64,000 bases of DNA from positions 1 to 64,000 of the forward strand of contig RHPI01003389.1 of assembly GCA_009103225.1 (NCBI GenBank). Direction: 5' to 3'. This DNA comes from Chlorokybus atmophyticus (lineage: Eukaryota > Plantae > Mesostigma and Chlorokybus algae). The notes beneath the pieces are model-generated. The model was not told the DNA's origin and made no database searches. It worked only from the letters and a program-made list of their open reading frames with translations. This document shows, piece by piece, positions 1-23,842 of the stretch; position 1 is the first letter of the stretch; every line of letters starts with the position of its first letter. Both the position numbers and the translations under genes were made by a program.

Positions 1-2377
1 CGTTACCTGTGCCTGGGGATAGGGGAGTTGGTTTTGCTGACATGCAACAACAACAGAGTGGTGCTTGTTGGTTGATACTCACACACATGCACTCACACGC
101 GCAAAAACATGTACTCATCGTCTCACTATGCAACCCAATTGTGTCGCGCGTCTCTGGGAAGGGGGTGGGAGCAGCAGCGGTAGCAAGCAGGCACCTGAAT
201 CTGTTGTCGTTTTGTTGCATGCGGAAACACGTGCGACAACGACGACCACAAACCCACCACCAAAACAAACAAGCTCCTTTGCTTCCGCTGCTCATTATCC
301 TTTAATCCCAGGCATGCAACAGTATGCCGATCGGCGTCGTTCGTGTTCGTGCATGTACTGTACTCTGTAGAGCGTACACAATACGCTAGCTGACACAACA
401 TGCAGTGTGTGTACAGCGGGTTATATATGTAAGCGAGCGTGTCATGTACGCTCTCGTACCTCCAACGCACGCATCCCCGCCTTTCTCACACACACACGTG
501 TCCACCGCACAGCGTTTGTGCCAGTAACTCCGCAAGCCAAGCCAGGCCAAGCCTAGGCCCAGGCCTAGGCCTAGGCCTGGGTTTTGGCTTGGCTTGGCCC
601 AGTGTCCTCGCCAGTCTCAGCGACATGCATGCTATCGCTTTGCATGTGTTGCACCGCTTCATTCATGCCTGGCAGCCATGCTCGCGTGGCCGGCGGCGTC
701 GGTGGCGTCGGCGGCGGTCGGGGGGGCGCTGTCGCCGTGCTGCTCGCTGCTACCGCGCCTGCCTGACGGCAGCGCTCCACAAGCCGTAGTCGGCCGATCT
801 TGCCGTCGTCATACTCCTCCTCAACGACACCGCCGCCGCAGCCAGCATACCACCGCAGCTCAGCCTCCCCGCGCATGCAGCAGCGACGCCAACACCGACG
901 ACGACGCTCACAACAGCCGCAACCACAGCCACAACCTCACCAGCGTCACCCGCAGAGAGGCGTTGGTGGTAGGGCCCGCCGCGGCCGCTGGTTCTGAGGA
1001 GGAGGCGAAGGCGGCGGCGGCGGCGGCTTCGCCCACGTCGTCGTCCGCAGCCGTCACCACCACCACCTTGCCGATGGTAGGATTACTGAGAGTGGAGCAG
1101 TTGACATGGCCCAATCCGCACAGCAACAACTTCATCCGCGTCTGCATTCGACATCGCACTCTGGCGCAGCTGGAGCAAACGCCACCACGACCCGTTACCT
1201 GTGCCTGGGGATAGGGGAGTTGGTTTTGCTGACATGCAACAACAACAGAGTGGTGCTTGTTGGTTGATACTCACACATATGCACTCACACGCGCACACAC
1301 ACTGTACTGTACTCGTCGTCTCACTATGCAACCCAATTGTGTCGCGCGTCTCTGGGAAGGGGGTGGGAGCAGCAGCGGTAGCAAGCAGGCACCTGAATCT
1401 GTTGTCGTTGTGTTGCATGCGGAAACACGTGCAACAACGACGACCAGAAAACCACCACCAAAACCAACAAGCTCCTTTGCTTCCGCTGCTCATTATCCTT
1501 TGATCCCAGGCATATGGAACAGTATGCCGATCGGCTTCGTTCGTGTTCGTGCATGTACTGTACTCTGTAGAGCGTACACAATACGCTAGCTGACACAACA
1601 TGCAGCGTGTATACAGCGGGTTATATATGTGAGCGAGCGCGTAATGTACGCTCTCGTACCTCCAACGCACGCATCCCCGCCTTTCTCACACACACAAACA
1701 GTGCAATCAACTCAACTTCTCTGCCTACGCACACGTGTCCACTGCACAGAGTTCGTGCCAGTGACTCCGCAAGCCAAGCCAGGCCAAGCCTAGGCCCAGG
1801 CCTAGGCCTAGGCCTGGGTTTTGGCTTGGCTTGGCCCAGTGTCCTCGCCAGTCTCAGCGACATGCATGCTATCGCTTTGCATGTGTTGCACCGCTTCATT
1901 CATGCCTGGCAGCGGCCATGCTCGCGTGGCCGGCGGCGTCGGTGGCGTCGGCGGCGGTCGGGGGGGCACTGTCGCCGTGCTGCTCGCTGCTGCCACGCCT
2001 GCCTGACGGCAGCGCTCCACAAGCCGTAGTCGGCCGATCTTGCCGTCGTCATACTCCTCCTCAACGACACCGCCGCCGCAGCCAGCATACCACCGCAGCT
2101 CAGCCTCCCCGCGCGTGCAGCAGCGACGCCAACACCGACGACGCTCACAACAGCCGCAACCACAGCCACACAACCTCACCAGCGTCACCCGCAGAGAGGC
2201 GTTGCTGATAGGGCCCGCCGCGATAATGGCCGCCGCGGCCGCTGGTTCTGAGGAGGAGGCGAAGGCGGCGGCGGCGGCGGCTTCGCCCACGTCGTCGTCC
2301 GCAGCCGTCACCACCACCAACTTGCCGATGGTAGGATTACTGAGAGTGGAGCAGTTGACATGGCCCAATCCGCACAG
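1..2377. repeat. Tandem duplication (~1.2 kb unit) of the AKR upstream region and exon 1
   Basis: Sequence at 1 (cgttacctgtgcctggggatagg) recurs at 1193. Unit 1 ends at CACAG 1119-1123 and unit 2 at CACAG 2373-2377. The first unit is cut by the window edge. Confidence 0.95.
678..1076 (+). CDS. Orphan duplicated first exon of the AKR gene (plastid transit-peptide-like, 133 codons, intact GT donor)
   Basis: ATG678 MLAWPAASVASAAVGG...TRREALVVG...TLPM ends at donor gtagg (1077). It is near-identical to exon 1 of the copies at 1918 and 19242, and no exon 2 follows within its own unit. Confidence 0.75.
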
Positions 2378-5300
2378 TCATGTTGTGTCTGAGCCATTGA
2401 CTATCATCATCATCTCTGTCTTGTCTGTCTGACTGCTCCTGCTTTGCTGCCGTGTGAGACGTTCGTACGCTATTCGCTATCCGGTGCATTCTTTTCATTG
2501 CTGGACTCTCAAGCATTTCAGCATTCGCTGTGCCAATTACAGGCACATGCACGCTCATGGCTGGCTTCTGCAACCATCAATCAGAACCCAATCACCACTA
2601 CATTGGCTCAGGCAACAGCACAATCACTAGCACGCACGCACGCACGCATGGCAGCAAGGCACCGAAGGCAACGGGCTAACATACAGATCGCGATAGCAAG
2701 CACATACACACGCAAGCGCACAAGCACACGTGCACACGCACACGCACACGCACGAGCTGGTGCACACCCCCTCCCCCTCCCTCCCCACCCACCCACCCAC
2801 CCACCCACACACGCAGGTCCCCCCCGGCCTCCCCCTCTCCCCCTCGGGTCTCCTCCCCTCCGCGATCGTCAAGGGCTGCTGGCAGCTGTCGGGCGGGCAC
2901 AGGGGGGAGCGCGACACGGACAGGACCGCGGGGAGGGAGGCGGTCCAGGACTTTGAGAAGTTCGTGGAGGCTGGTGAGGGAGAGATGAGAGAGAGAATTG
3001 TTGGAGTGTGTGTGAGAGTGAGCGTGAGAGTGAGAGAGAAGAGGGGTTGATCGTGTGAGCTCGCTTGCGTGTGTGGGTGCGTACGTGTACATGTATGGTG
3101 TATACATGTATGGGGCACCAGTAGTAGTAGTCCTTGCTGCTGACTGCATGTGTTATGTAGACAGACTTGCAGTCCAACCAACGTCACTGTTGAGCAGAGC
3201 AGCACATACATGCACGCACGATCTCACACACCTCCCTCCCTCCCTGCCTGCACGCACGCATGCACGCATCTTCACACACACACACACACACACACACACC
3301 GCTCCTTCTTCCCAGGCATCACCACCTTCGACACCGCGGACATCTACGGCCCCTCCGAGTCCCTCATCGGCCGCTACCTATCCACTCTGAGAAAGAAGAG
3401 CGGCGTCGCGGTGTTCACCAAGATGTGTCTGTTCGGCCAGGACCAGGCGGACCCCACGTTCGAGTTCGTCAGGAGGAAGGTCGAGGGGAGCAGGGAGAGG
3501 ATGGGGGTGGAGAGGATCGACATGGTGCAGTTTTATTGGCAGGTGAGAGGAAAGGAGAGTGTGTGTGTGTGTGTGTGTGTCATGATGTGTGTGTCCCATC
3601 GCAGCATAGTTTCTGTCTGTTACTTGTATTGCAGTTTGTGACAGGCTTTGGTTGTTGTCGTGTTTGGATAACTCGTTTGTGTTGTTTGACTTGCTTGGCG
3701 TGCAGGGTGCTGCGCACTGCACTGTGTGTGTGTGCCGTGCTTGTTGACCGCATGTTGTGAGTGCAGCATACAAGCAACTGTGTATCAATAACTGCAACTA
3801 TGCATTCACTCAGTTGCATATGCAGACACGAGTCCGCTTGTCGATGCAAGTGTAGTGCACTGTCGGAACAGAACCTTGTGGTTGTGTCGTACTTTCACGT
3901 CACTGTCTGGTTCTCCCTCACTCTCTTTGTGCGTCTCAGGACTACTCCATCCCCAACTACGTGACGGCCGCCAAGCACCTGTCCACGCTGCAGGCGCAGG
4001 GCCGCATCCGCGCCATCGGCGTCACCAACTTCGACGTGCCGCGAATGCGGGAGATGATGGATGCAGGGGTGAAGATTGAAGCCGCGCAAGTAGGCGTGCA
4101 TGCGCGTGCGCGTGCATACGTGCGAGTGTGTGTGTGCGTGTGTGTGCATGTATGTGCTCATCCATTGTGTGCGTGCGTATACACATGTGCGTGCGCGTGC
4201 GCGCGTGTGTGTGTGTGTGTGTGTGTGTAGTTTATGTACAAGGGGTGTCCGTGCGTGCGTGTGCATGTGTGAGCACCTGCACGTATGTGTCATTGTTGTG
4301 TCACCAACAACATACCCACGTTCCCACCTGACATCCTTCGCTTGAAATCCAGGTTCAGTACTCCCTGTTGGACCGGCGTCCCGAGAACGGCATGGTGGAC
4401 TTTTGCCGTGAGAACAACGTCAAGCTGCTGCCGTATGGTGTTGTGGCCGGCGGCTTCCTCAGCGACAAGTACCTCGGCAAGACCTTCGCCGAGGCGCGCA
4501 AGGACATCAACACGTACAGCAAGCAGAAGTACGCGTCCGTCATAAACCAGGTGCGTGTGGTGGGTATAAGTCCGTTGGTATGGCAGGTGTGCGCATAGTT
4601 TACTCATGGCGGCAATGGTTGGTGCATGTGCCATGCCTGACTTCATTCGATGTACTATGTACTACTAGCATCAGCAAGCAGCAGATCTAGTGTGCACGTG
4701 GGCGCATATACGCACACGCCAGTGTATGCAGCGTGCTGATTCATGTAGAAAGAGCTGTATACGTGCGTGTGTGCGCGCACGCATACAGCGTCTTTCTACA
4801 GCGTGTAAATGTACATGATTCTACTGGGTATGCTCAGTTGCAACCCGCCACAATGTCTCACCTCACAAATGTCAACCTTACTCAGGTCGGCGCCTGGGAC
4901 TGGTTCCAGGATCTCCTTGGTGTCCTGAGAAGTGTGGCCGACCGTCACAACGCGAGCGTGTCGAACGTTGCAACGCGTTGGGTCCTGCAGCGTCCCTCTG
5001 GCGTCGTGGCCGCCGCGATCGTCGGGGCACGCAACGCCGCGCACGTCGACGACCACCGACGCGCGTTCGCGTTCGAGTTGAGCGAAGAGGATCTTGCGCG
5101 GATTGATGAGGTGTTGGAGAAGGGGAAGAGGCCGAGAGGGGATTGCTACACGTGGGAAAGGGGGGGAGTGTTCTGAGCGGGGAGCGAGTGTGTTTGGTGT
5201 TGTTGTTCGTGTTGGGTTTGGCACATGGCCTCGCCTTGATGTTGGGCCAGGTTGAGGCCTACATATGTAGTTCATTACTTTGTTTCTTTGAGCAAAGAGT

Positions 5301-6278
5301 TGTTCTGGCACGTTGCCTCGGTATGTTGTGGGGTTGGGTGAAGGGATGTTGTGCAAACGAGGTGTTTTTGTGTGGTGAGCGGCAGGAGGGGTGTTGCATG
5401 ATCAGGGGGGACGATTCGCGGACAAAACAATTGTTGTAAAATGCGTAATATTTTCTATCCAAAGAACAACAGGCCATGCAGTGTTGCTACGCGGTTTTGG
5501 TTTTTGTGTCTTGAGTGACTGTATGTTTTGAGGCAGTCCTGACCACGCGCAGTGTTGGTGAAGATGGGATGATTTCATGTACGTGCGTGCGTTAGAGCGT
5601 GGAGTCGGCCAACACGTTGCCCCAACAAGTTGTGTCACTGAGGGACCGTTTGCATTGAGGGTGTACTTGCACACTGATTGCAGCATTTAGAGTTCTTGTT
5701 TGGTTTAATACAAGTTGCAACGGTGGGTGATGTTAGCCAACGCCATCCCTCAAGAAGACAACAGTGGTGAAAGCACGCCAAGAAGTCCAATTCTTAGATT
5801 TGTGCAGTTTATGAAAAATCACTTGCCAGCAAAAGGAAGGTAGGTCTACAAAATAAGCATGCAGAAGTACGCTATCTATGTCGTCATTTGCATGCCTTGT
5901 GGTCGAATCTTCGCAACCATAGCATATGGTATGTACACGTGTGCAGGCTCAGGCCGACCTGTTGACGACCAATACCTGCACCGCGAGACGTTTGCTAGCC
6001 ACAACTGCGACTTAGTAAAGCATGCAAAGGAATTGGACGTTGAACTCCTTCTCGTTAACAATGTTTAAGAGGAGATGAAAGCGCTTGTGGAGAAAGCGCA
6101 TTCGAAGACGGCCACCGTGCGAGGAGAGATCTCCAAGGCAACAATACTCGCAACCGAATTCATAAGCAACCCTAGCACATTAATGTTCCCGCAATTGCTT
6201 TCCGATATTGCCGAACGACCTCTACAAGTGTAACAAGTGGGCTCCGACCACTAGGCTATGGTAGCGTCTTTTGCTACC
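1119..6278. repeat. Segmental duplication, copy A (partner 18493-23675)
   Basis: Colinear high-identity match across promoter, all AKR exons and introns, and about 1.1 kb downstream. Homology stops at 6278/23675. Confidence 0.95.
1918..5176 (+). CDS. Aldo-keto reductase copy A (At2g27680/RSP5-like family); exon 1 has a 2-bp frameshift
   Basis: Six exons, approximately 1918-2330, 2817-2973, 3316-3541, 3941-4089, 4353-4551 and 4886-5176. They give GCWQLSGGH, GITTFDTADIYG, RIDMVQFYW, IGVTNFD, QVQYSLLDRRPE and PYGVVAGGFLSDKY. Exon 1 is 413 nt because of an extra CA near 2170; ATG2226 is in frame with exon 2. Confidence 0.9.
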
Positions 6279-13590: not shown

Positions 13591-14106
13591 ACCTGAGGCA
13601 ATCTGCGAACAGAACTACACTGTAACTCTCCGTCCAAAGACCCAATGCCCTATGTGTGTGGTTGTAACATATGCTGCATGTACCGCTTCCGCGAGCAATG
13701 CTTTGCAAGCACTGCTTGAAAAGCGAATTGGGCGCAAACCAAAAGCTGTTTCAGCGCCATGTAACACCATGCGATTCCATCACATCGCACAGGACAGGCC
13801 TTCGACTCAGCAAACCTGTGTGGCAGAGCCTTTGAAGGCACATCATCACGTACGTAAGTCTTTTGTTTGATGGATGCGTGGCCCCTGATGCCACTGTCGA
13901 TGCTTGGACGGACCTGAGCTCAGGCCTAAGAGAGTGAAGCCAGCCTTGGGTTGTGCTGAGAGAAAGAGAACAAGGCAGCAGCAGGTCAGGCTACTGAACA
14001 ATCCTAGACCAGAGTCGTAATGCACAGCGCCCACATCTTAGTGTTTACGCAGGGTTGGGGGTGTTCAATTTTACTCCTAACCTAGGTGTATCTTAGTTGG
14101 GGGTGT

Positions 14107-17005
14107 TCAACTGTTCCGTCTGCGCAGGGCCTCTGCATCGTCGTGCTTGCCCAGCTCGCACAGGACATGTGCCAGGTTGTTGAGGGACTTCGCGGTGTTG
14201 GGGTGGTCCGATCCCAGCTGCGCTTCGCAAATCGCCAGTGCCCGTCTGTGCAGGGCCTCAGCGTCGTCGAGCTTGCCCAGCTCGTAGAGGACAAGTGCCA
14301 GGTTGTTGAGGGACTTCGCGGTGTCGGGGTGGTCCAATCCCAGCTGCGCTTCGCGAATCGCCAGTGCCCGTCTGTGCAGGGCCTCAGCGTCGTCATGCTT
14401 GCCCAGCTCGCACAGGACAGATGCCAGGTTGTTGAGGGACTTCGCGGTGTTGGGGTGGTCCGATCCCAGCTGCGCTTCGCGAATAGCCAGTGCCCGTCTG
14501 TGCAGGGCCTCAGCGTCGTCGAGCTTGCCCAGCTCGCACAGGACAGATGCCAGGTTGTTGAGGGACGTCGCGGTGTCGGGGTGGTCCGATCCCAGCTTCG
14601 CTTCCCAAATAGCCAGTGCCCGTCTGTGCAGGGCCTCAGCGTCGTCGAGCTTGCCCAGCTCGCACAGGACATGTGCCAGGTCGTTGAGGGACGTCGCGGT
14701 GTCGGGGTGGTCCGATCCCAGCTGCGCTTCACAAATAGCCAGTGCCCGTCTGTGCAGAGCCTCAGCATCGTCGTGCTTGCCCAGCTCGCACAGGACATCT
14801 GCCAGGTTGTTGAGGGACTTCCCGGTGTCGGGGTGGTCCGATCCCAGCTTCGCTTCCGAAATAGCCAGTGCCCGTCTTAGCAGGGCCTCAGCCTTGCCGT
14901 ACCTGCCCTCGCATGTCAAGCAAGCGCCTTGCAAAGTCCACAGATGTGGCAAAAGTGTCATGTCTTGACATTCAACTTGCTGCAAGATGCGTTCACATCT
15001 GTGCAAGATACTCCAAGCCTTTGTTGTCTCATAGAGGACAATATAAAACTCCGCTAATGCCAGTGCAACATCAATGACCCGCTGCAAATAGTCCGCATCT
15101 AGCGGAACCTTGATCCCGCTGGGGTCACCACCCTCTGGCAAAGCCATGGACACTGCATACGCAAAGTGTTCCGTGTCTTGTCCAACCTTGCCCACTTCAG
15201 CGATAGCCAGAACCGCAGCCTGGGCGATCTGGACTCCCTCTTTCTTGCCATCCCATCTGCCAAAACTCTGCACCAGCGGGTGGAAAGCTATCCCTGCATC
15301 GAGAGTCCGCTCCGCTAATGCATACTTGTTGAGCAGTCCAGCCGCAACGTGGATATTATCAATGCTAACATCCTTCGCCAGCAATGTACAGGCAGCCTGT
15401 TTCAATAGGTCCAACCGTATTGGAGCTGCAGCAAACCATCCACCCAATCTCAATACGATTCTGGCCAAAGCAACTGCCTGAGGTGGATGTCTGGCATCAC
15501 TCAACATCATCTCCATACTCGTAGCAAACAAAGTTGTTAGATGCGGGCTAGTTTGGAATTCGGGGTCATCCAGTTCCTGGTTGAAGATCTCAACACCTTC
15601 AGTGTCAAGCAGGTTCAAGACCCACTCCGGGCCGCTCCCATACTCATGCATCAGCTTAGCAGAAACTGATAGGGATAAAGCATGGCACCCTAGAGCCACA
15701 GCCAGCTCCTTGACCTTTGCATCGGGAGTCTCTGGCGGCAAACCCGATTTGAGCAATTGACACGCATACATCTCTTCAAGGTTCTTCAGCTCCAGGAGGC
15801 CTTGGCTGGTTGAATACATGCGCTGACGGGCAGTCAGTATGACATGGCAAGGGCCTTCCCGCGGCAGGTATCCCGGATACTGATGCTCGTCATCCACGTT
15901 GTCTAACACCAGGAGACAAGGGGTTTCAGACTGTTCAAGCGCTGTCCGGATCGTCAATACACCATCTCGGTTCGGGTCCCGCACACTCGAATGCATCGTC
16001 CCAGACCTGTCATGAAAGGGTCTTTACCAAGCGTACCACATTAACAGTTTACATAAGCATCATAATCTTGCTCAAAGCTAGCAAACGCTCTTACCCGGTG
16101 TCGACAGCGCCTAGGCTGATGCCCAGCGGAGCTGCCAACCCAAGGAAGTTAACCTGCAACAAGTCTTTGCTGGCGGCAATCCAGAGCAGTTTGTCGTATT
16201 GGTTTTTATGGCTATAAGCGTACTTCAACGCCAGGTGCGTCTTGCCGGAACCCCCCATGCCTTGGATGCAGACACAGCCACATTCATCTTTCAGCATGTT
16301 CTTCAGCTCTGTCATCTCTTGGCTCCTTCCAATGAAGAGCTTTTTGTCACGATATGGCACCGTGTTGACTCTCTTTCCTGTTGTGCAGACTCGTCTGAGC
16401 CTCTTGCAAACTTTTTGCACAATCGAATCCACATAGGTGTCCTCGTAATTGTCATGTTTTGACATAACGTCCATGCATACAACCGCGAGCTCACAAATCA
16501 CTTGCGTCCAGTCCGCTTCATTCATGCCGCATTTTGTCCACAGCTGCCCCCCGTGATGCTCCCAGGCTGTACCTACTGCAAGCATAGACACACATACGCA
16601 TGACAAACAGACTTGAGGACCGACTTGTTTATCCCCGTGAATAATCGGTATACCTTTCTTGTTCTTGATCGCCTCTGCATCTATGTCATCAGGAGTGATA
16701 TGGTAACAGGCTGGCATGCAGTTTCCTCGATCCAGAAACACTCGCAGCTCCTTCATGCACCAGTAGCTCTCAAAGAACTGCGGAGACAACACCACGATGC
16801 CGCATTTCGCCGTTCGCATGGCTGAGTCCATTTCCACAGAAGAAAGATCTCCCATACAGAGTATCCTGTCGTCGAAGAACACCCGCAGCTTCTGCTTCTT
16901 AAGCTCGCGGTTCAGCCATGCGCTGAATGTCCTCTTTGTGTCCGGACCCCGATGACAGAGAAACACGTCGTAACCTTCTTCCCGAGTTGCTTGCTGTGCA
17001 GCCAT
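14107..17005 (-). CDS. TIR-NB-ARC-TPR (TNP-type NLR) protein
   Basis: Exons 17005-16654, 16572-16095 and 16006-14107, all GT-AG and in frame. TIR: YDVFLCHRGPDTKRTF...SYWCMKEL. Walker A GMGGSGKT, Walker B CLLVLDNVDD, GGWFAAAPI and FHPLVQ. These are followed by five full 42-aa TPR repeats and one truncated repeat. Confidence 0.93.
14117..14880 (-). repeat. Coding tandem repeat, 126-bp unit (42-aa TPR, LGSDHPDTA.SLNNLA.VLCELGK.DDAEALHRRALAI.EAQ)
   Basis: About six near-identical 126-bp units are visible directly in the DNA. Confidence 0.97.
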
Positions 17006-18600: not shown

Positions 18601-19241
18601 TGCTGACATGCAACAACAACAGAGTGGTGCTTGTTGGTTGATACTCACTCACATGCACTCACACGCGCACACACATGTACTCATCGTCTCACTATGCAAC
18701 CTAATTGTGTCGCGCGTCTCTGGGAAGGGGGTGGGAGCAGCAGCGGTAGCAAGCAGCAGGCACCTGAATCTGCTGTCGTTGTGTTGCATGCGGAAACACG
18801 TGCAACAACGACGACCACAAAACCACCACCAAAACAAACAAGCTCCTTTGCTTCCGCTGCTCATTGTCCTTCAATCCCAGGCATATGGAACAGTATGCCG
18901 ATCGGCTTCGTTCGTGTTCGTGCATGTACTGTACTCTGTAGAGCGTACACAATACGCTAGCTGACACAACATGCAGTGTGTATACAGCGGTTTATATATG
19001 TAAGCGAGCGCGTAATGTACGCTCTCGTACCTCCAACGCACGCATCCCCGCCTTTCTCACACACACACGTGTCCACCGCACAGCGTTTGTGCCAGTGACT
19101 CCGCAAGCCAAGCCTAGGCCCAGGCCTAGGCCTAGGCCTGGGTTTTGGCTTGGCTTGGCCCAGTGTCCTCGCCAGTCTCAGCGACATGCATGCTATCGCT
19201 TTGCATGTGTTGCACCGCTTCATTCGTGCCTGGCAGCGGCC

Positions 19242-22200
19242 ATGCTCGCGTGGCCGGCGGCGTCGGTGGCGTCGGCGGCGGTCGGGGGGGCGCTGTCGCC
19301 GTGCTGCTCGCTGCTGCCACGCCTGCCTGACGGCAGCGCTCCACAAGCCGTAGTCGGCCGATCTTGCCGTCGTCATACTCCTCCTCAACGACACCGCCGC
19401 CGCAGCCAGCATACCACCGCAGCTCAGCCTCCCCGCGCATGCAGCAGCGACGCCAACACCGACGACGACGCTCACAACAGCCGCAACCACAGCCACAACC
19501 TCACCAGCGTCACCCGCAGAGAGGCGTTGGTGGTAGGGCCCGCCGCGATAATGGCCGCCGCGATAATGGCCGCCGCGGCCGCTGGTTCTGAGGAGGAGGC
19601 GAAGGCGGCGGCGGCGGCGGCTTCGCCCACGTCGTCGTCCGCAGCCGTCACCACCACCACCAACTTGCCGTTGGTAGGATTCCTGCGAGTGGAGCAGTTG
19701 ACATGGCCCAATCCGCACAGTCATGTTGTGTCTGAGCCATTGACTATCATCATCATCATCTCTGCCTTGTCTGTCTGACTGCCTCCTGCTTTGCTGCCGT
19801 GTGAGACGTTCGTACGCTATTCGCTATCCGGTGCATTCATTTCATTGCTGGACTCTCAAGCATTTCAGCATTCGCTGTGCCACTTACAGGCACATGCACG
19901 CTCATGGCTGCCTTCTGCAACCATCAATCAGAACCCAATCACCATTACATTGGCTCAGGCAACAGCACAATCAGTAGCACGCACGCACGCATGGCAGCAA
20001 GGCACCGAAGGCAATGGGCTAACATACAGATCGCGATGGCAAGCACACGCACACGCACGAGCTGGTGCACACCCCCTCCCCCTCCCTCCCCACCCACCCA
20101 CCCACCCACCCACACACGCAGGTCCCCCCCGGCCTCCCCCTCTCCCCCTCGGGTCTCCTCCCCTCCGCGATCGTCAAGGGCTGCTGGCAGCTGTCGGGCG
20201 GGCACAGGGGGGAGCGCGACACGGACAGGACCGCGGGGAGGGAGGCGGTCCAGGACTTTGAGAAGTTCGTGGAGGCTGGTGAGGGAGAGATGAGAGAGAG
20301 AGTTGTTGGAGTGTGTGTGAGAGTGAGAGAGAAGAGGGGTTGATCGTGTGAGTGAGGACTTGCGTGTGTGGGTGCGTGCGTGTACATGTATGGTGTATAC
20401 ATGTGTGGGGCACCAGTAGTAGTCCTTGCTGCTGAGTGCATGTGTTATGTAGACAGACTTGCAGTCCAAACAACGTCACTGTTGAGCAGAGCAGCACATA
20501 CATGCACGCACGATCTCACACACCTCCCTCCCTCCCTGCCTGCCTGCCTGCACGCACGCACGCACGCATCTTCACACACACACACCCCGCCCCTTCTTCC
20601 CAGGCATCACCACCTTCGACACCGCGGACATCTACGGCCCCTCCGAGTCCCTCATCGGCCGCTACCTATCCACTCTGAGAAAGAAGAGCGGCGTCGCGGT
20701 GTTCACCAAGATGTGTCTGTTCGGCCAGGACCAGGCGGACCCCACGTTCGAGTTCGTCAGGAGGAAGGTCGAGGGGAGCAGGGAGAGGATGGGGATGGAG
20801 AGGATCGACATGGTGCAGTTTTATTGGCAGGTGAGAGGAAAGGAGTGTGTGTGTGTGTGTGTGTGTCATGATGTGTGTGTCCCATCGCAGCATAGTTTCT
20901 GTCTGTTACTTGTATTGCAGTTTGTGACAGGCTTTGGTTGGTTGTTGTCGTGTTTGGATAAGTCGTTTGTGTTGTTTGACTTGCTTGGCGTGCAGGGTAC
21001 TGCGCACTGCGCTGTGTGTATGTGCCGTGCTTGTTGACCGCATGTTGTGAGTGCAGCATACAAGCAACTGTGTATCAAGAACTGCAACTATGCATTCACA
21101 TTCACAGTTGCATATGCAGACACGAGTCCGCTTGTCGAGGCAAGTGCAGTGCACTGTCGGAACAGAACCTTGTGGTTGTGTCGTACTTTCACGTCACTGT
21201 CGGTTCTCCCTCACTCTCTTTGTGCGTCTCAGGACTACTCCATCCCCAACTACGTGACGGCCGCCAAGCACCTGTCCACGCTGCAGGCGCAGGGCCGCAT
21301 CCGCGCCATCGGCGTCACCAACTTCGACGTGCCGCGAATGCGGGAGATGATGGATGCAGGGGTGAAGATTGAAGCCGCGCAAGTAGGCATGCATGCGCGT
21401 GCGCGTGCATATGTGCGAGTGTGTGTGTGCGTGTGTGTGCATGTATACATGTGCTCATCAATTGTGCGCGTGCATGTACACATGCGCGTGCGCGTGCGCG
21501 TGCGCGTGCGCGTGCGCGTGCGCGTGCGCGTGCGCGTGCGCGTGTGTGTGTGTGTGTGTGTGTGTGTGTAGCTTATGTACAAAGGGTGTCCGTGCGTGCG
21601 TGTGCATGTGTGAGCACCTGCACGTATGTGTCATTGTTGTGTCACCAACAACCTACCCACGTTCCCACCTGACATCCTTCGCTTGAAATCCAGGTTCAGT
21701 ACTCCCTGTTGGACCGGCGTCCCGAGAACGGCATGGTGGACTTTTGCCGTGAGAACAACGTCAAGATGCTGCCGTATGGTGTTGTGGCCGGTGGCTTCCT
21801 CAGCGACAAGTACCTCGGCAAGACCTTCGCCGAGGCGCGCAAGGACATCAACACGTACAGCAAGCAGAAGTACGCGTCCGTCATAAACCAGGTGCGTGTG
21901 GTGGGTTTAAGTCCGTTGGTATGGCAGGTGTGCGCATAGTTTACTCATGGCGGCAATGGTTGGTGCATGTGCCATGCCTGACTTCATTCGATGTACTATG
22001 TACTATGTACTACTAGCATCAGCAAGCAGCAGATCTAGTGTGCACGCAGGCTTATATACGCACACGCCAGTGTATGCAGCGTGCTTTCATTCATGTAGAA
22101 AGAGCTGTATATGTGCGTGTGTGCACGCACGCATACAGCTCTTTCTACAGCGTGTATATGTACATAATTCTACTGGGTATGCTCAGTTGCAACCCGCCAC

Positions 22201-22525
22201 AATGTCTCGCCTCACGAATGTCAACCTTACTCAGGTCGGCGGCTGGGACTGGTTCCAGGATCTCCTTGGTGTCCTGAGAAGTGTGGCCGACCGTCACAAC
22301 GCGAGCGTGTCGAACGTTGCAACGCGTTGGGTCCTGCAGCGTCCCTCTGGCGTCGTGGCCGCCGCGATCGTCGGGGCACGCAACGCCGCGCACGTCGACG
22401 ACCACCGACGCGCGTTCGCGTTCGAGTTGAGCAAAGAGGATCTTGCGCGGATTGATGAGGTGTTGGAGAAGGGGAAGAGGCCGAGAGGGGATTGCTACAC
22501 ATGGGAAAGGGGGGGAGTGTTCTGA
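19242..22525 (+). CDS. Aldo-keto reductase copy B, intact, with plastid transit-peptide-like N-terminus
   Basis: Exons 19242-19673, 20122-20278, 20604-20830, 21233-21382, 21694-21891 and 22235-22525 splice in frame with GT-AG sites. The AKR motifs are the same as in copy A. Confidence 0.92.
21484..21569. repeat. (GCGCGT)10 + (GT)n alternating purine-pyrimidine microsatellite in AKR-B intron 4
   Basis: Seen directly; the paralogous site in copy A (~4186-4228) has only about 2 units. Confidence 0.95.
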
Positions 22526-23842
22526 GCGGGGGGCGAGTGTGTTTGATGTTGTTGTTCGTGTTGGGTTTGGCACATTGCCTCGCCTTGATGTGATGTTGGG
22601 CCAGGTTGAGGCCTACATTTGTAGTTAACTACTATGTTTCTTTGAGCAGAGAGTTGTTTTGGCACGTTGGCTCGGGATGTTGTGGGGTTGGGTTGAGGGG
22701 TGTTGTGCAAACAAGGTGTTTTTATGTGGTGAGAGGCAGGAGGGGTGTTGCATGATCAGGGGGACGATTCGCGGATAAAACAATTGTTGTAAAATGCGTG
22801 ATATTTTCTATTCTAAGAACAACAGGCCATACAGTGTTGCTACGCGGTTTTGGTTTTTGCGTGTTTTAAGTGACTGTATGTTTGAAGGCAGTCGTGATTG
22901 CGCGCAGTTTTGGTGAAGATGGGATGATTTCATGTACTTGCGTGCGTTAGAGCGCGGAGTTGGCCAACACGTTGCCCCAACAAATTGTGTCACCGAGGGA
23001 CCGTTTGCATTGAGGGTGTACTTGCACACTGATTGCAATTGTTGAAGTTCTTGTTTGATTTGATACAAGTCTGCAATGGTGGGTGATGTTAGCCAAAGCA
23101 ATCCCTCCGGAATACAACGATAACAAAAGCACACCAATGCGATCCCTTTAGAATACAACAATGACAAAAGCACACCAAGAATTCCAATTCTTAAGTTTGT
23201 GCAATTCATGAAAAAACGACTTGCCAGTAAAAGGAAGGTAGGTCTACGAAATAGGCATGCAGAAGCATACTATCTATGTCGTCGAATGCATGCCTTGTGG
23301 TCGAATCTTCGCAATCACAGCATACGGTATGTACACGTGTGCAGGCTCAGGCCGACCTGTCGACAACCAATACCTGCACCGCGAGAAAGTTTGCTGGCCA
23401 CAACCGCAACTTAGTAAAGCATGCAAAGGAATTTGAAGTTAAACTCCTTTTCGTCGACAATGTATAAAAGGAGATGAAAGCGCCTGTGGAGAAAACGCGT
23501 TCGAAGACGGCCACCGTGCGAGGAGAGATCTCCAGAGCAACAATACTCGCAACCGAATTCATAAGCATCTCTAGCACATTAATGTTCCCGCAATTGCTTT
23601 CCGTATTGCCGAACGACCTCCACAAGTGCAACAAGTGGACTCCGGCCACTAGCTATGGTCGCAAAAGACGCTACCGTGAGTGAGGTCTGTTACAATTTAT
23701 CCAAAATCGTGACAACAAGTGAAAGATAAATTATCATATTATTCATCTCATGTGCATATGTGTGTGCTTTTGTGCTAAGATGCCCAACCAACTCTACCTC
23801 AGCGTTGTTGTTTTTGTCTTTGAAAGCGGGGGGGGGGGGGGG

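Follow-up and report, generated by a model that had tools for sequence, protein, structure and literature searches.

Near-identical arrays of WD40, ANK and TPR repeats, with hypervariable sites on the concave face and repeat-number polymorphism, are established in fungal NLRs, and an array of high internal conservation (HIC) is recognised by a threshold of 85% identity over at least 100 aa (Dyrka et al., 2014). A 2026 paper further reported such arrays in NLR-like proteins, and their enrichment in ATPase-containing proteins, across all domains of life including plants, and compared them with brown-algal NB-ARC-TPR receptors; Chlorokybus is not mentioned in that paper, and its text contains no streptophyte or chlorophyte term. 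In this study, a TIR-NB-ARC-TPR gene of the streptophyte alga Chlorokybus atmophyticus was analyzed, which lies on the minus strand of a 64,000-nt stretch (hereafter the window; assembly GCA_009103225.1, contig RHPI01003389.1, positions 1 to 64,000) and ends in six near-identical 42-aa TPR units. The array is probably the ligand-sensing end of an NLR-like protein, produced by recent tandem duplication and unequal exchange and with its variation focused on the predicted binding groove; the sensing role itself is a predicted one. The original prediction, made from the letters of the window, had described a fungal HIC-style array and regarded the combination as one of features not usually described together, a view that the NLR arrays reported in the 2026 paper contradict.

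Like the algal gene, the Podospora anserina NB-ARC-TPR genes (such as Pa_2_10340 and PaPnt1; a 42-residue Podospora repeat protein is known from PDB 4Y6C) encode an NB-ARC followed by 42-residue TPR_10-type units that are more than 85% alike, their unit number differs between close gene copies, and their variable residues lie on the concave face when mapped on kinesin light chain. The two systems differ at the N-terminus, which is HET, Patatin or sesB in Podospora vs. a plant-like TIR in the alga; moreover, allelic unit-number polymorphism and positive selection were shown in Podospora, whereas in the alga the difference of six vs. nine units is one between paralogs, and the alga is a streptophyte in which only one such gene pair was detected. 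The TPR domains of the kinesin light chains KLC1 and KLC2 (PDB 6FUZ, 3ZFW, and 7AI4) are of the same 42-residue type, and their peptide-contact residues coincide with the algal variable positions. Unlike the algal units, however, the kinesin light chain repeats are mutually diverged and conserved across species, and the protein is a transport adaptor with neither NB-ARC nor TIR. The Ectocarpus NB-ARC-TPR proteins are likewise an algal family with fast repeat turnover and proposed diversification of recognition, but the discussion of the 2026 paper describes exon reshuffling by alternative splicing and repeat exchange between paralogs with weak internal conservation.

Tandem Repeats Finder detected the array at 14116–14892 with a period of 126, 6.2 copies, 93% matches, no indels, and a score of 1302, confirming the six near-identical 126-bp units of the original prediction. 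A 24-nt unit probe matched six times in the window, always inside the array, while no match was expected by chance. The mean pairwise unit identity was 86.7% (range 83–93%) over 252 aa, which lies above the fungal threshold and bears out the HIC-style label; two further HIC features were also found, an NLR-like architecture (TIR, NB-ARC, and TPR_10/TPR_12 by Pfam) and variation on the concave, ligand-binding surface by sequence alignment to KLC1. The units and their two most variable codons are as follows, in a register that starts at RRALAI.

14122..14877, minus strand: array of six near-identical TPR units of the kinesin-light-chain type, 126 bp (42 aa) each, all within one exon (Pfam TPR_12 9e-116, TPR_10 6.7e-83)
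14752–14877, 14626–14751, 14500–14625, 14374–14499, 14248–14373, and 14122–14247, minus strand: full units 1 to 6, respectively, unit k running from 14877−126(k−1) down to 14752−126(k−1)
14797..14799 in unit 1, with first coordinates 14671, 14545, 14419, 14293, and 14167 in units 2–6, minus strand: the most variable codon, unit position 27 in helix A, D/H/S/S/L/H
14857..14859 in unit 1, with 14731, 14605, 14479, 14353, and 14227 in units 2–6, minus strand: the second hypervariable codon, unit position 7 at the end of helix B, S/C/W/R/R/C

All six units are mutually distinguishable, with 20 of the 126 nucleotide columns variable. Eleven codons vary in amino acid (7, 10, 13, 17, 19, 20, 24, 27, 30, 35, and 42) and five vary only synonymously (5, 29, 37, 38, and 40), which requires at least 16 non-synonymous and 7 synonymous changes. 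The differences that had been read earlier from the letters, in a numbering equal to the present register minus 10, were all found: D/H/S/S/L/H at its position 17 (register 27), with the codons GAT, CAT, TCT, TCT, CTT, and CAT; the hypervariable position 39 (register 7), S/C/W/R/R/C; and H/L at 25 (register 35), K/T at 10 (register 20), and D/N at 7 (register 17). Their clustering at a few codons is real, as positions 7 and 27 account for 7 of the 16 amino-acid changes. The changes are also mostly non-synonymous (16 vs. 7), as had been stated, but because 74% of the sites are non-synonymous, this ratio equals the neutral expectation and is not itself evidence of selection; the excess of non-synonymous changes was therefore rejected as such evidence.

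To locate the variable residues, an AlphaFold2 model of long-frame residues 290–629 was used (pLDDT 91.7, pTM 0.86), which showed a TPR solenoid with helix A at unit positions 16–31 and helix B at 35–42 running into 1–11 of the next unit. By both structure and sequence, the best PDB matches were the TPR domains of KLC1 and KLC2, with 37–46% identity, and the Podospora 42-residue repeat protein (4Y6C) also matched the array. The array was aligned to KLC1 without gaps over four units, and the published KLC1 contacts with the JIP1 and TorsinA peptides (R266, N259/N301/N343, N302/N344/N386, V305, L347, L348, K309, N351, Y313, K340, and R327) were transferred through this alignment, every residue letter being checked. 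The resulting groove set of nine unit positions, 7, 20, 23, 24, 27, 28, 30, 31, and 35, was thus defined without reference to the alga. Within it, position 27 aligns with V305/L347, contacts of the cargo tyrosine, and position 7 with R327, a contact of the cargo C-terminus.

The groove set holds 6 of the 11 variable positions of the window array (p=0.005), 8 of 16 when the window gene and its close paralog P0001 (Chrsp35S05191, nine units) are pooled (p=8e-4), and 6 of the 7 positions with at least three residues (p=1e-4). Over 15 near-identical units, groove positions carry up to six residues each, and their mean entropy is 1.12 bits vs. 0.14 bits elsewhere (p=1e-5); even among the positions that are free to vary in diverged arrays, it is 1.26 vs. 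0.26 bits in the near-identical arrays (p=0.003). The same focus was seen in an independent contig from the public run X4, which differs from unit 5 by K20M, N23D, N24S, L27S, and E31K, all five non-synonymous and all five in the groove. When each unit was compared at the protein level with the nearest paralog unit, the orthology of units being uncertain, groove residues differed at 15 of 54 sites (28%), non-groove repeat residues at 7 of 198 (3.5%), and the non-repeat part at 17 of 654 (2.6%). The groove differs from the non-repeat part with an odds ratio of 14 (p=5e-10), and non-groove repeat residues are not distinguishable from the rest of the protein (p=0.31). These comparisons indicate that amino-acid differences between units concentrate 8- to 10-fold on the predicted groove, at helix-A positions 20, 23, 24, 27, 30, and 31 and at positions 35 and 7, and that the predicted groove evolves at roughly ten times the rate of the remainder of the gene, which is intact and otherwise conserved. 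The earlier idea of a variable ligand groove was thereby supported, in that the variable residues fall on ligand-contact positions of the closest solved structure in the KLC1 alignment.

The units are 87–96% identical in DNA, synonymous sites included, with a synonymous divergence (pS) of about 0.09, indicating that they arose from a single unit through recent tandem duplication in register, and that their likeness reflects recent common descent and not protein-level constraint. Unit identity was then compared across the family. Readable arrays were obtained from P0003 (eight units), P0125 (Chrsp235S03604, fifteen units), P0004, P0126, and P0127, where P0003 and P0125, like P0006, are Chlorokybus paralogs or relatives; the mean unit identity was 50–53% in these five, vs. 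86% in P0001. Near-identical units were found only in one recently duplicated gene pair, and not in P0003, P0125, P0006, P0004, P0126, and P0127. When the array alone served as the query, long bacterial TPR proteins dominated the matches; among proteins of 346–1100 aa, only P0001 and P0002 (the annotated model of the window gene) exceeded about 61% identity to it. Since the units of the other family members are only about 50% alike, the near-identical state is derived and recent. The diverged capping TPR ahead of the array is retained; replacement or amplification affected the internal units only.

Apart from the array, P0001 aligns with the window protein without gaps and with 17 differences in 654 residues (97% identical), but the window protein carries six units and P0001 nine. 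In P0001, the protein sequences of units 7 and 8 repeat those of units 4 and 5, and unit 9 begins with the same 19 residues as unit 6, indicating duplication of a three-unit block whose joint lies within a unit. Because P0001 has nine units and this block duplication, changes of unit number by unequal exchange at the 126-bp period are supported by the sequences, in agreement with the repeat turnover that had been proposed. No unit of the window gene has an identical partner in P0001, or the reverse, even the closest pairs showing 2 to 7 residue differences. P0001 unit 9 and window unit 6 have identical flanks and differ at 7 of 42 residues (4, 20, 22, 23, 27, 30, and 31). As a side observation, helix A of P0001 unit 9 has three arginines in place of L22, N23, and H27, plus K20R, position 22 being a core leucine.

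As for the proposed search for paralogs sharing the 126-bp unit, P0001 is one such gene, and contigs of public runs point to a further locus. Contigs of runs X3 (14603) and X1 (14855) depart from the array at codon 8 of units 3 and 1, respectively, and continue into the same foreign sequence, so that at least one further locus carries the unit. This further locus possibly has an intron or a truncation at codon 8.

A four-gamete test among the units gave 10 incompatible pairs of 21 site pairs. This is weak evidence of exchange: CpG transitions, which can arise repeatedly, make up 7 of the 20 variable columns. Ongoing homogenisation of the units is not demonstrated. Nor is concerted evolution, which the original prediction had assumed, demonstrated in its strict sense: the units differ by about 7% in DNA, and their synonymous divergence of about 0.09 is no smaller than the rough value of about 0.05 between paralog-like copies that was read from contig differences. 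The data can be accounted for by a single burst of amplification and subsequent unequal exchange.

With these results, each unit would act as a cassette supplying a few groove residues. Point changes in the groove, together with gain, loss and re-ordering of units, would alter what the groove binds. A bound ligand would set free the NB-ARC switch, leading to oligomerisation and to activation of the TIR enzyme. A stronger version, that a streptophyte alga independently uses the fungal route in a TNP homolog, with in-register unequal exchange and exchange between paralogs and positive selection on about eight groove residues, can be held only tentatively and is on balance doubtful.

Several points weigh against a diversifying sensor. 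Using counts from minimal substitution numbers, the ratio of non-synonymous to synonymous rates (dN/dS) of the whole unit was 0.81 (16 vs. 7 changes), and the Nei-Gojobori method over all unit pairs gave a pN/pS of 0.80. The nine groove codons, with 11 non-synonymous and 2 synonymous changes, reached 1.20, which does not differ from 1 (p=0.58), vs. 0.39 for the other 33 codons (5 and 5 changes). Diverged arrays, too, have their greatest variability at the groove positions, so that part of the pattern is ordinary low constraint; the CpG transitions weaken the four-gamete evidence; the groove was mapped by sequence alignment to KLC1 rather than from model coordinates; and a single assembly underlies the unit order, since the short-read contigs of the public runs break within the array. 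The site-wise dN/dS check that had been suggested thus came out in part. Non-synonymous changes do concentrate in the groove (11 of 16, p=1.8e-4), while synonymous ones do not (p=0.28), but the ratios are not significantly above 1 and positive selection is unproven. At these counts, the groove pattern fits diversifying selection, but neutral change at unconstrained sites is also possible, so that the groove may vary by selection for diversity or by mere tolerance.

The array could accordingly be a passive by-product, in which recent amplification by slippage or unequal exchange was followed by drift of the least constrained groove residues, possibly in a gene copy made redundant by duplication, with no selection for diversity and no special mechanism of diversification. 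The dN/dS values just given, the variability of the same positions in diverged arrays, the confinement of the near-identical state to one recently duplicated pair, and the explanation of several recurrent changes by CpG transitions all agree with such an origin. Yet drift of unconstrained residues does not readily account for positions 2, 5, 9, 14, 21, and 40, which are free to vary in diverged arrays and invariant in all 15 near-identical units, nor for the chemically radical nature of the groove replacements (D/H/S/L/T/R at 27; S/C/W/R at 7). In addition, the non-groove repeat and the 654-aa non-repeat part are conserved between the paralogs and the frame is intact, which argues that neither copy is decaying. 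A passive origin is therefore possible, but we consider it the less likely account compared with a ligand-sensing array.

Two further explanations are improbable. That the array is collapsed, expanded or chimeric in the assembly, mixing units of several paralogous loci, is suggested by the contigs of four public runs, which fall into 40–120 nt pieces inside the array with a summed k-mer depth of 5–10 times the flanks; by the sharing of the unit with at least one further locus, whose identical loose ends lie at the same in-unit position; and by the warning in the literature that arrays of near-identical repeats need long reads. The six units can nevertheless all be told apart, the frame is intact, the cap and the tail are common to the paralog, and several contigs match array segments without a difference; the groove focus and the near-identity of the units are moreover independent of unit order. 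An artefact of this kind is thus very unlikely. Since the closest solved folds are kinesin light chains, the protein might instead be a housekeeping scaffold or regulator whose TPR groove, like that of kinesin light chain, is a binding site for endogenous partners, rather than an immune sensor. A conserved partner, however, should keep the groove residues constant, and the opposite was seen; TIR plus NB-ARC is the architecture of death or immune switches, and the gene belongs to a multi-copy, rapidly rearranging family of the Chlorokybus genome, which makes a housekeeping role highly improbable. The preferred reading, a ligand-sensing array with groove-focused variation, points to where ligand specificity would lie and provides natural variants for testing. 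The array extends to a streptophyte alga the list of lineages whose NLR-like genes carry near-identical repeats, and within one gene family it presents a near-identical state arising recently from ordinary diverged repeats.

The relation of the algal gene to land-plant TNP proteins was examined by an exhaustive, profile-free search with the TIR-NB-ARC-linker part, which returned, in order, Chlorokybus paralogs, metagenomic TIR-NB-TPR proteins, and land-plant proteins about 1,190 aa long (Marchantia paleacea, Diphasiastrum, and Adiantum). These land-plant X-TIR-NB proteins were the best named matches outside Chlorokybus. Pfam placed a TIR near residue 350 in the Marchantia and Diphasiastrum proteins (two of the three), and the NB region lies near 600–790 in the Adiantum protein and starts from about 670 in the Marchantia alignment. 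This layout corresponds to the XTNX/TNP pattern, so that the land-plant matches are putative TNPs by their architecture. The algal gene shares with land-plant TNP/XTNX proteins the domain order TIR, NB-ARC, TPR (Pfam) and is collinear with the Marchantia paleacea protein KAG6551759.1, with 32% identity in the TIR (E 9e-27) and 27% in the NB-ARC and helical linker (E 2e-36). KAG6551759.1 also carries one kinesin-light-chain-type unit at its C-terminus, where the algal array begins; this terminal unit (P0133 residues 1139–1188) aligns to every array unit of P0001. Two differences were found. The land-plant TNP-like proteins have an N-terminal extension of about 350 aa, whereas the algal TIR starts from about residue 12 with no extension, and Pfam finds no TPR in these land-plant proteins, whereas the alga has six to fifteen clear units.

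These comparisons indicate that the algal gene is a homolog of TNP-type proteins, without the N-terminal extension. In an earlier search of two charophytes, Klebsormidium and Chara, no TNP orthologs were found (Johanndrees et al.). Either the multi-unit array is an elaboration of the alga, whose arrays would have expanded, or land-plant TNPs derive by reduction from an ancestor with several units. The proposed fusion of a variable sensor to a plant-type TNP therefore stands as to its architecture, TIR-NB-ARC-TPR collinear with a Marchantia X-TIR-NB protein, while selection for diversity is unproven. The further inference that ancestral TNPs were diversifying sensors is contradicted, because the near-identical state is derived and recent and only one recently duplicated pair has near-identical units; the array says nothing for it. 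What the algal homolog offers is a clear, enlarged kinesin-light-chain-type TPR groove, with residues varying both between units and between two near-identical paralogs. If fungal-style diversification proved true, it would give a first handle on what TNP-type receptors sense.

The gene has three exons, and its ends, introns, domains, and motifs are listed below. The intron joints were read from contigs of two RNA-like public runs, X2 and X4.

14107..17005, minus strand: whole TIR-NB-ARC-TPR gene from start to stop codon, 910 aa product (open reading frames and translations)
16654–17005, 16095–16575, and 14107–16006, minus strand: exons
16576..16653, minus strand: intron 1, 78 nt, GT..AG, within the TIR-coding part (X2 and X4 contigs join 16575 to 16654)
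16007..16094, minus strand: intron 2, 88 nt, GT..AG, within the NB-ARC-coding part (X2 and X4 contigs join across it)
16700..16975, minus strand: TIR domain, Pfam-matched part (TIR_2 2.5e-15, TIR 5.2e-14)
16745–16762, minus strand: WCMKEL motif of the TIR domain, with the candidate catalytic glutamate
15889..16261, minus strand: NB-ARC core from P-loop to Walker B (Pfam NB-ARC 2.2e-6)
16238–16261, minus strand: P-loop GMGGSGKT in the NB-ARC core
15889–15915, minus strand: Walker B motif LLVLDNVDD in the NB-ARC core
14878..15003, minus strand: diverged capping TPR ahead of the array, not homogenised and still alignable with paralog P0003
14107..14121, minus strand: C-terminal tail RRNS and stop codon (translation)

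Over 776 letters, the X2 junction contig shows 3 differences from the window. The spliced coding sequence, free of internal stops, encodes 910 aa and can be aligned collinearly with P0001 without gaps. The array lies in one open frame, 14107–15996 on the minus strand, and an upstream open frame, 16091–17005, encodes the TIR domain and the P-loop. The capping TPR forms helices at 59–73 and 77–94 in the AlphaFold2 model, and the protein end RRRNS, of which the first R is the last residue of unit 6, is the same in P0001. In Ectocarpus NB-ARC-TPR genes, each repeat is reportedly an exon of its own. The Chlorokybus gene is unlike that layout, with the cap, all units and the tail in one 1.9-kb exon (open frame 14107–16006) and no splice joint inside the array.

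The gene corresponds to the JGI model Chrsp94S08327 (P0002; Chlorokybus, portal Chlat1), which is equal to it over the whole array; the JGI annotation of Chlorokybus is cited in a preprint as CCAC 0220. This model seems mis-built, with about 137 aa extra at the N-terminus and 32 aa (SMEMM...WFAAA) skipped. The skipped residues occur in the open frame and in P0001, and a contig of run X4 crosses this place with no joint reported. At window position 15967, a long spliced X4 contig, about 98% identical to the window, lacks 5 nt, which would break the frame; the transcribed copy in the X4 sample may be a broken paralog or allele.

One X2 contig skips exactly 126 nt shortly past the stop codon (window 13956–14081), with minus-strand GT..AG ends. 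The skipped piece could be an intron of the 3′-untranslated region or a paralog indel, and its match to the repeat period may be a coincidence. A 15-nt direct repeat, GTTGGGGGTGTTCAA, occurs at 14054–14068 and 14096–14110 with a spacing of 42 nt, and its second copy overlaps the stop codon. The window also contains a segmental duplication, 161–6204 and 18730–23603, with a spacing of about 17.3 kb and pieces 89–99% identical, and the receptor gene lies just upstream of its second copy (18730–23603).

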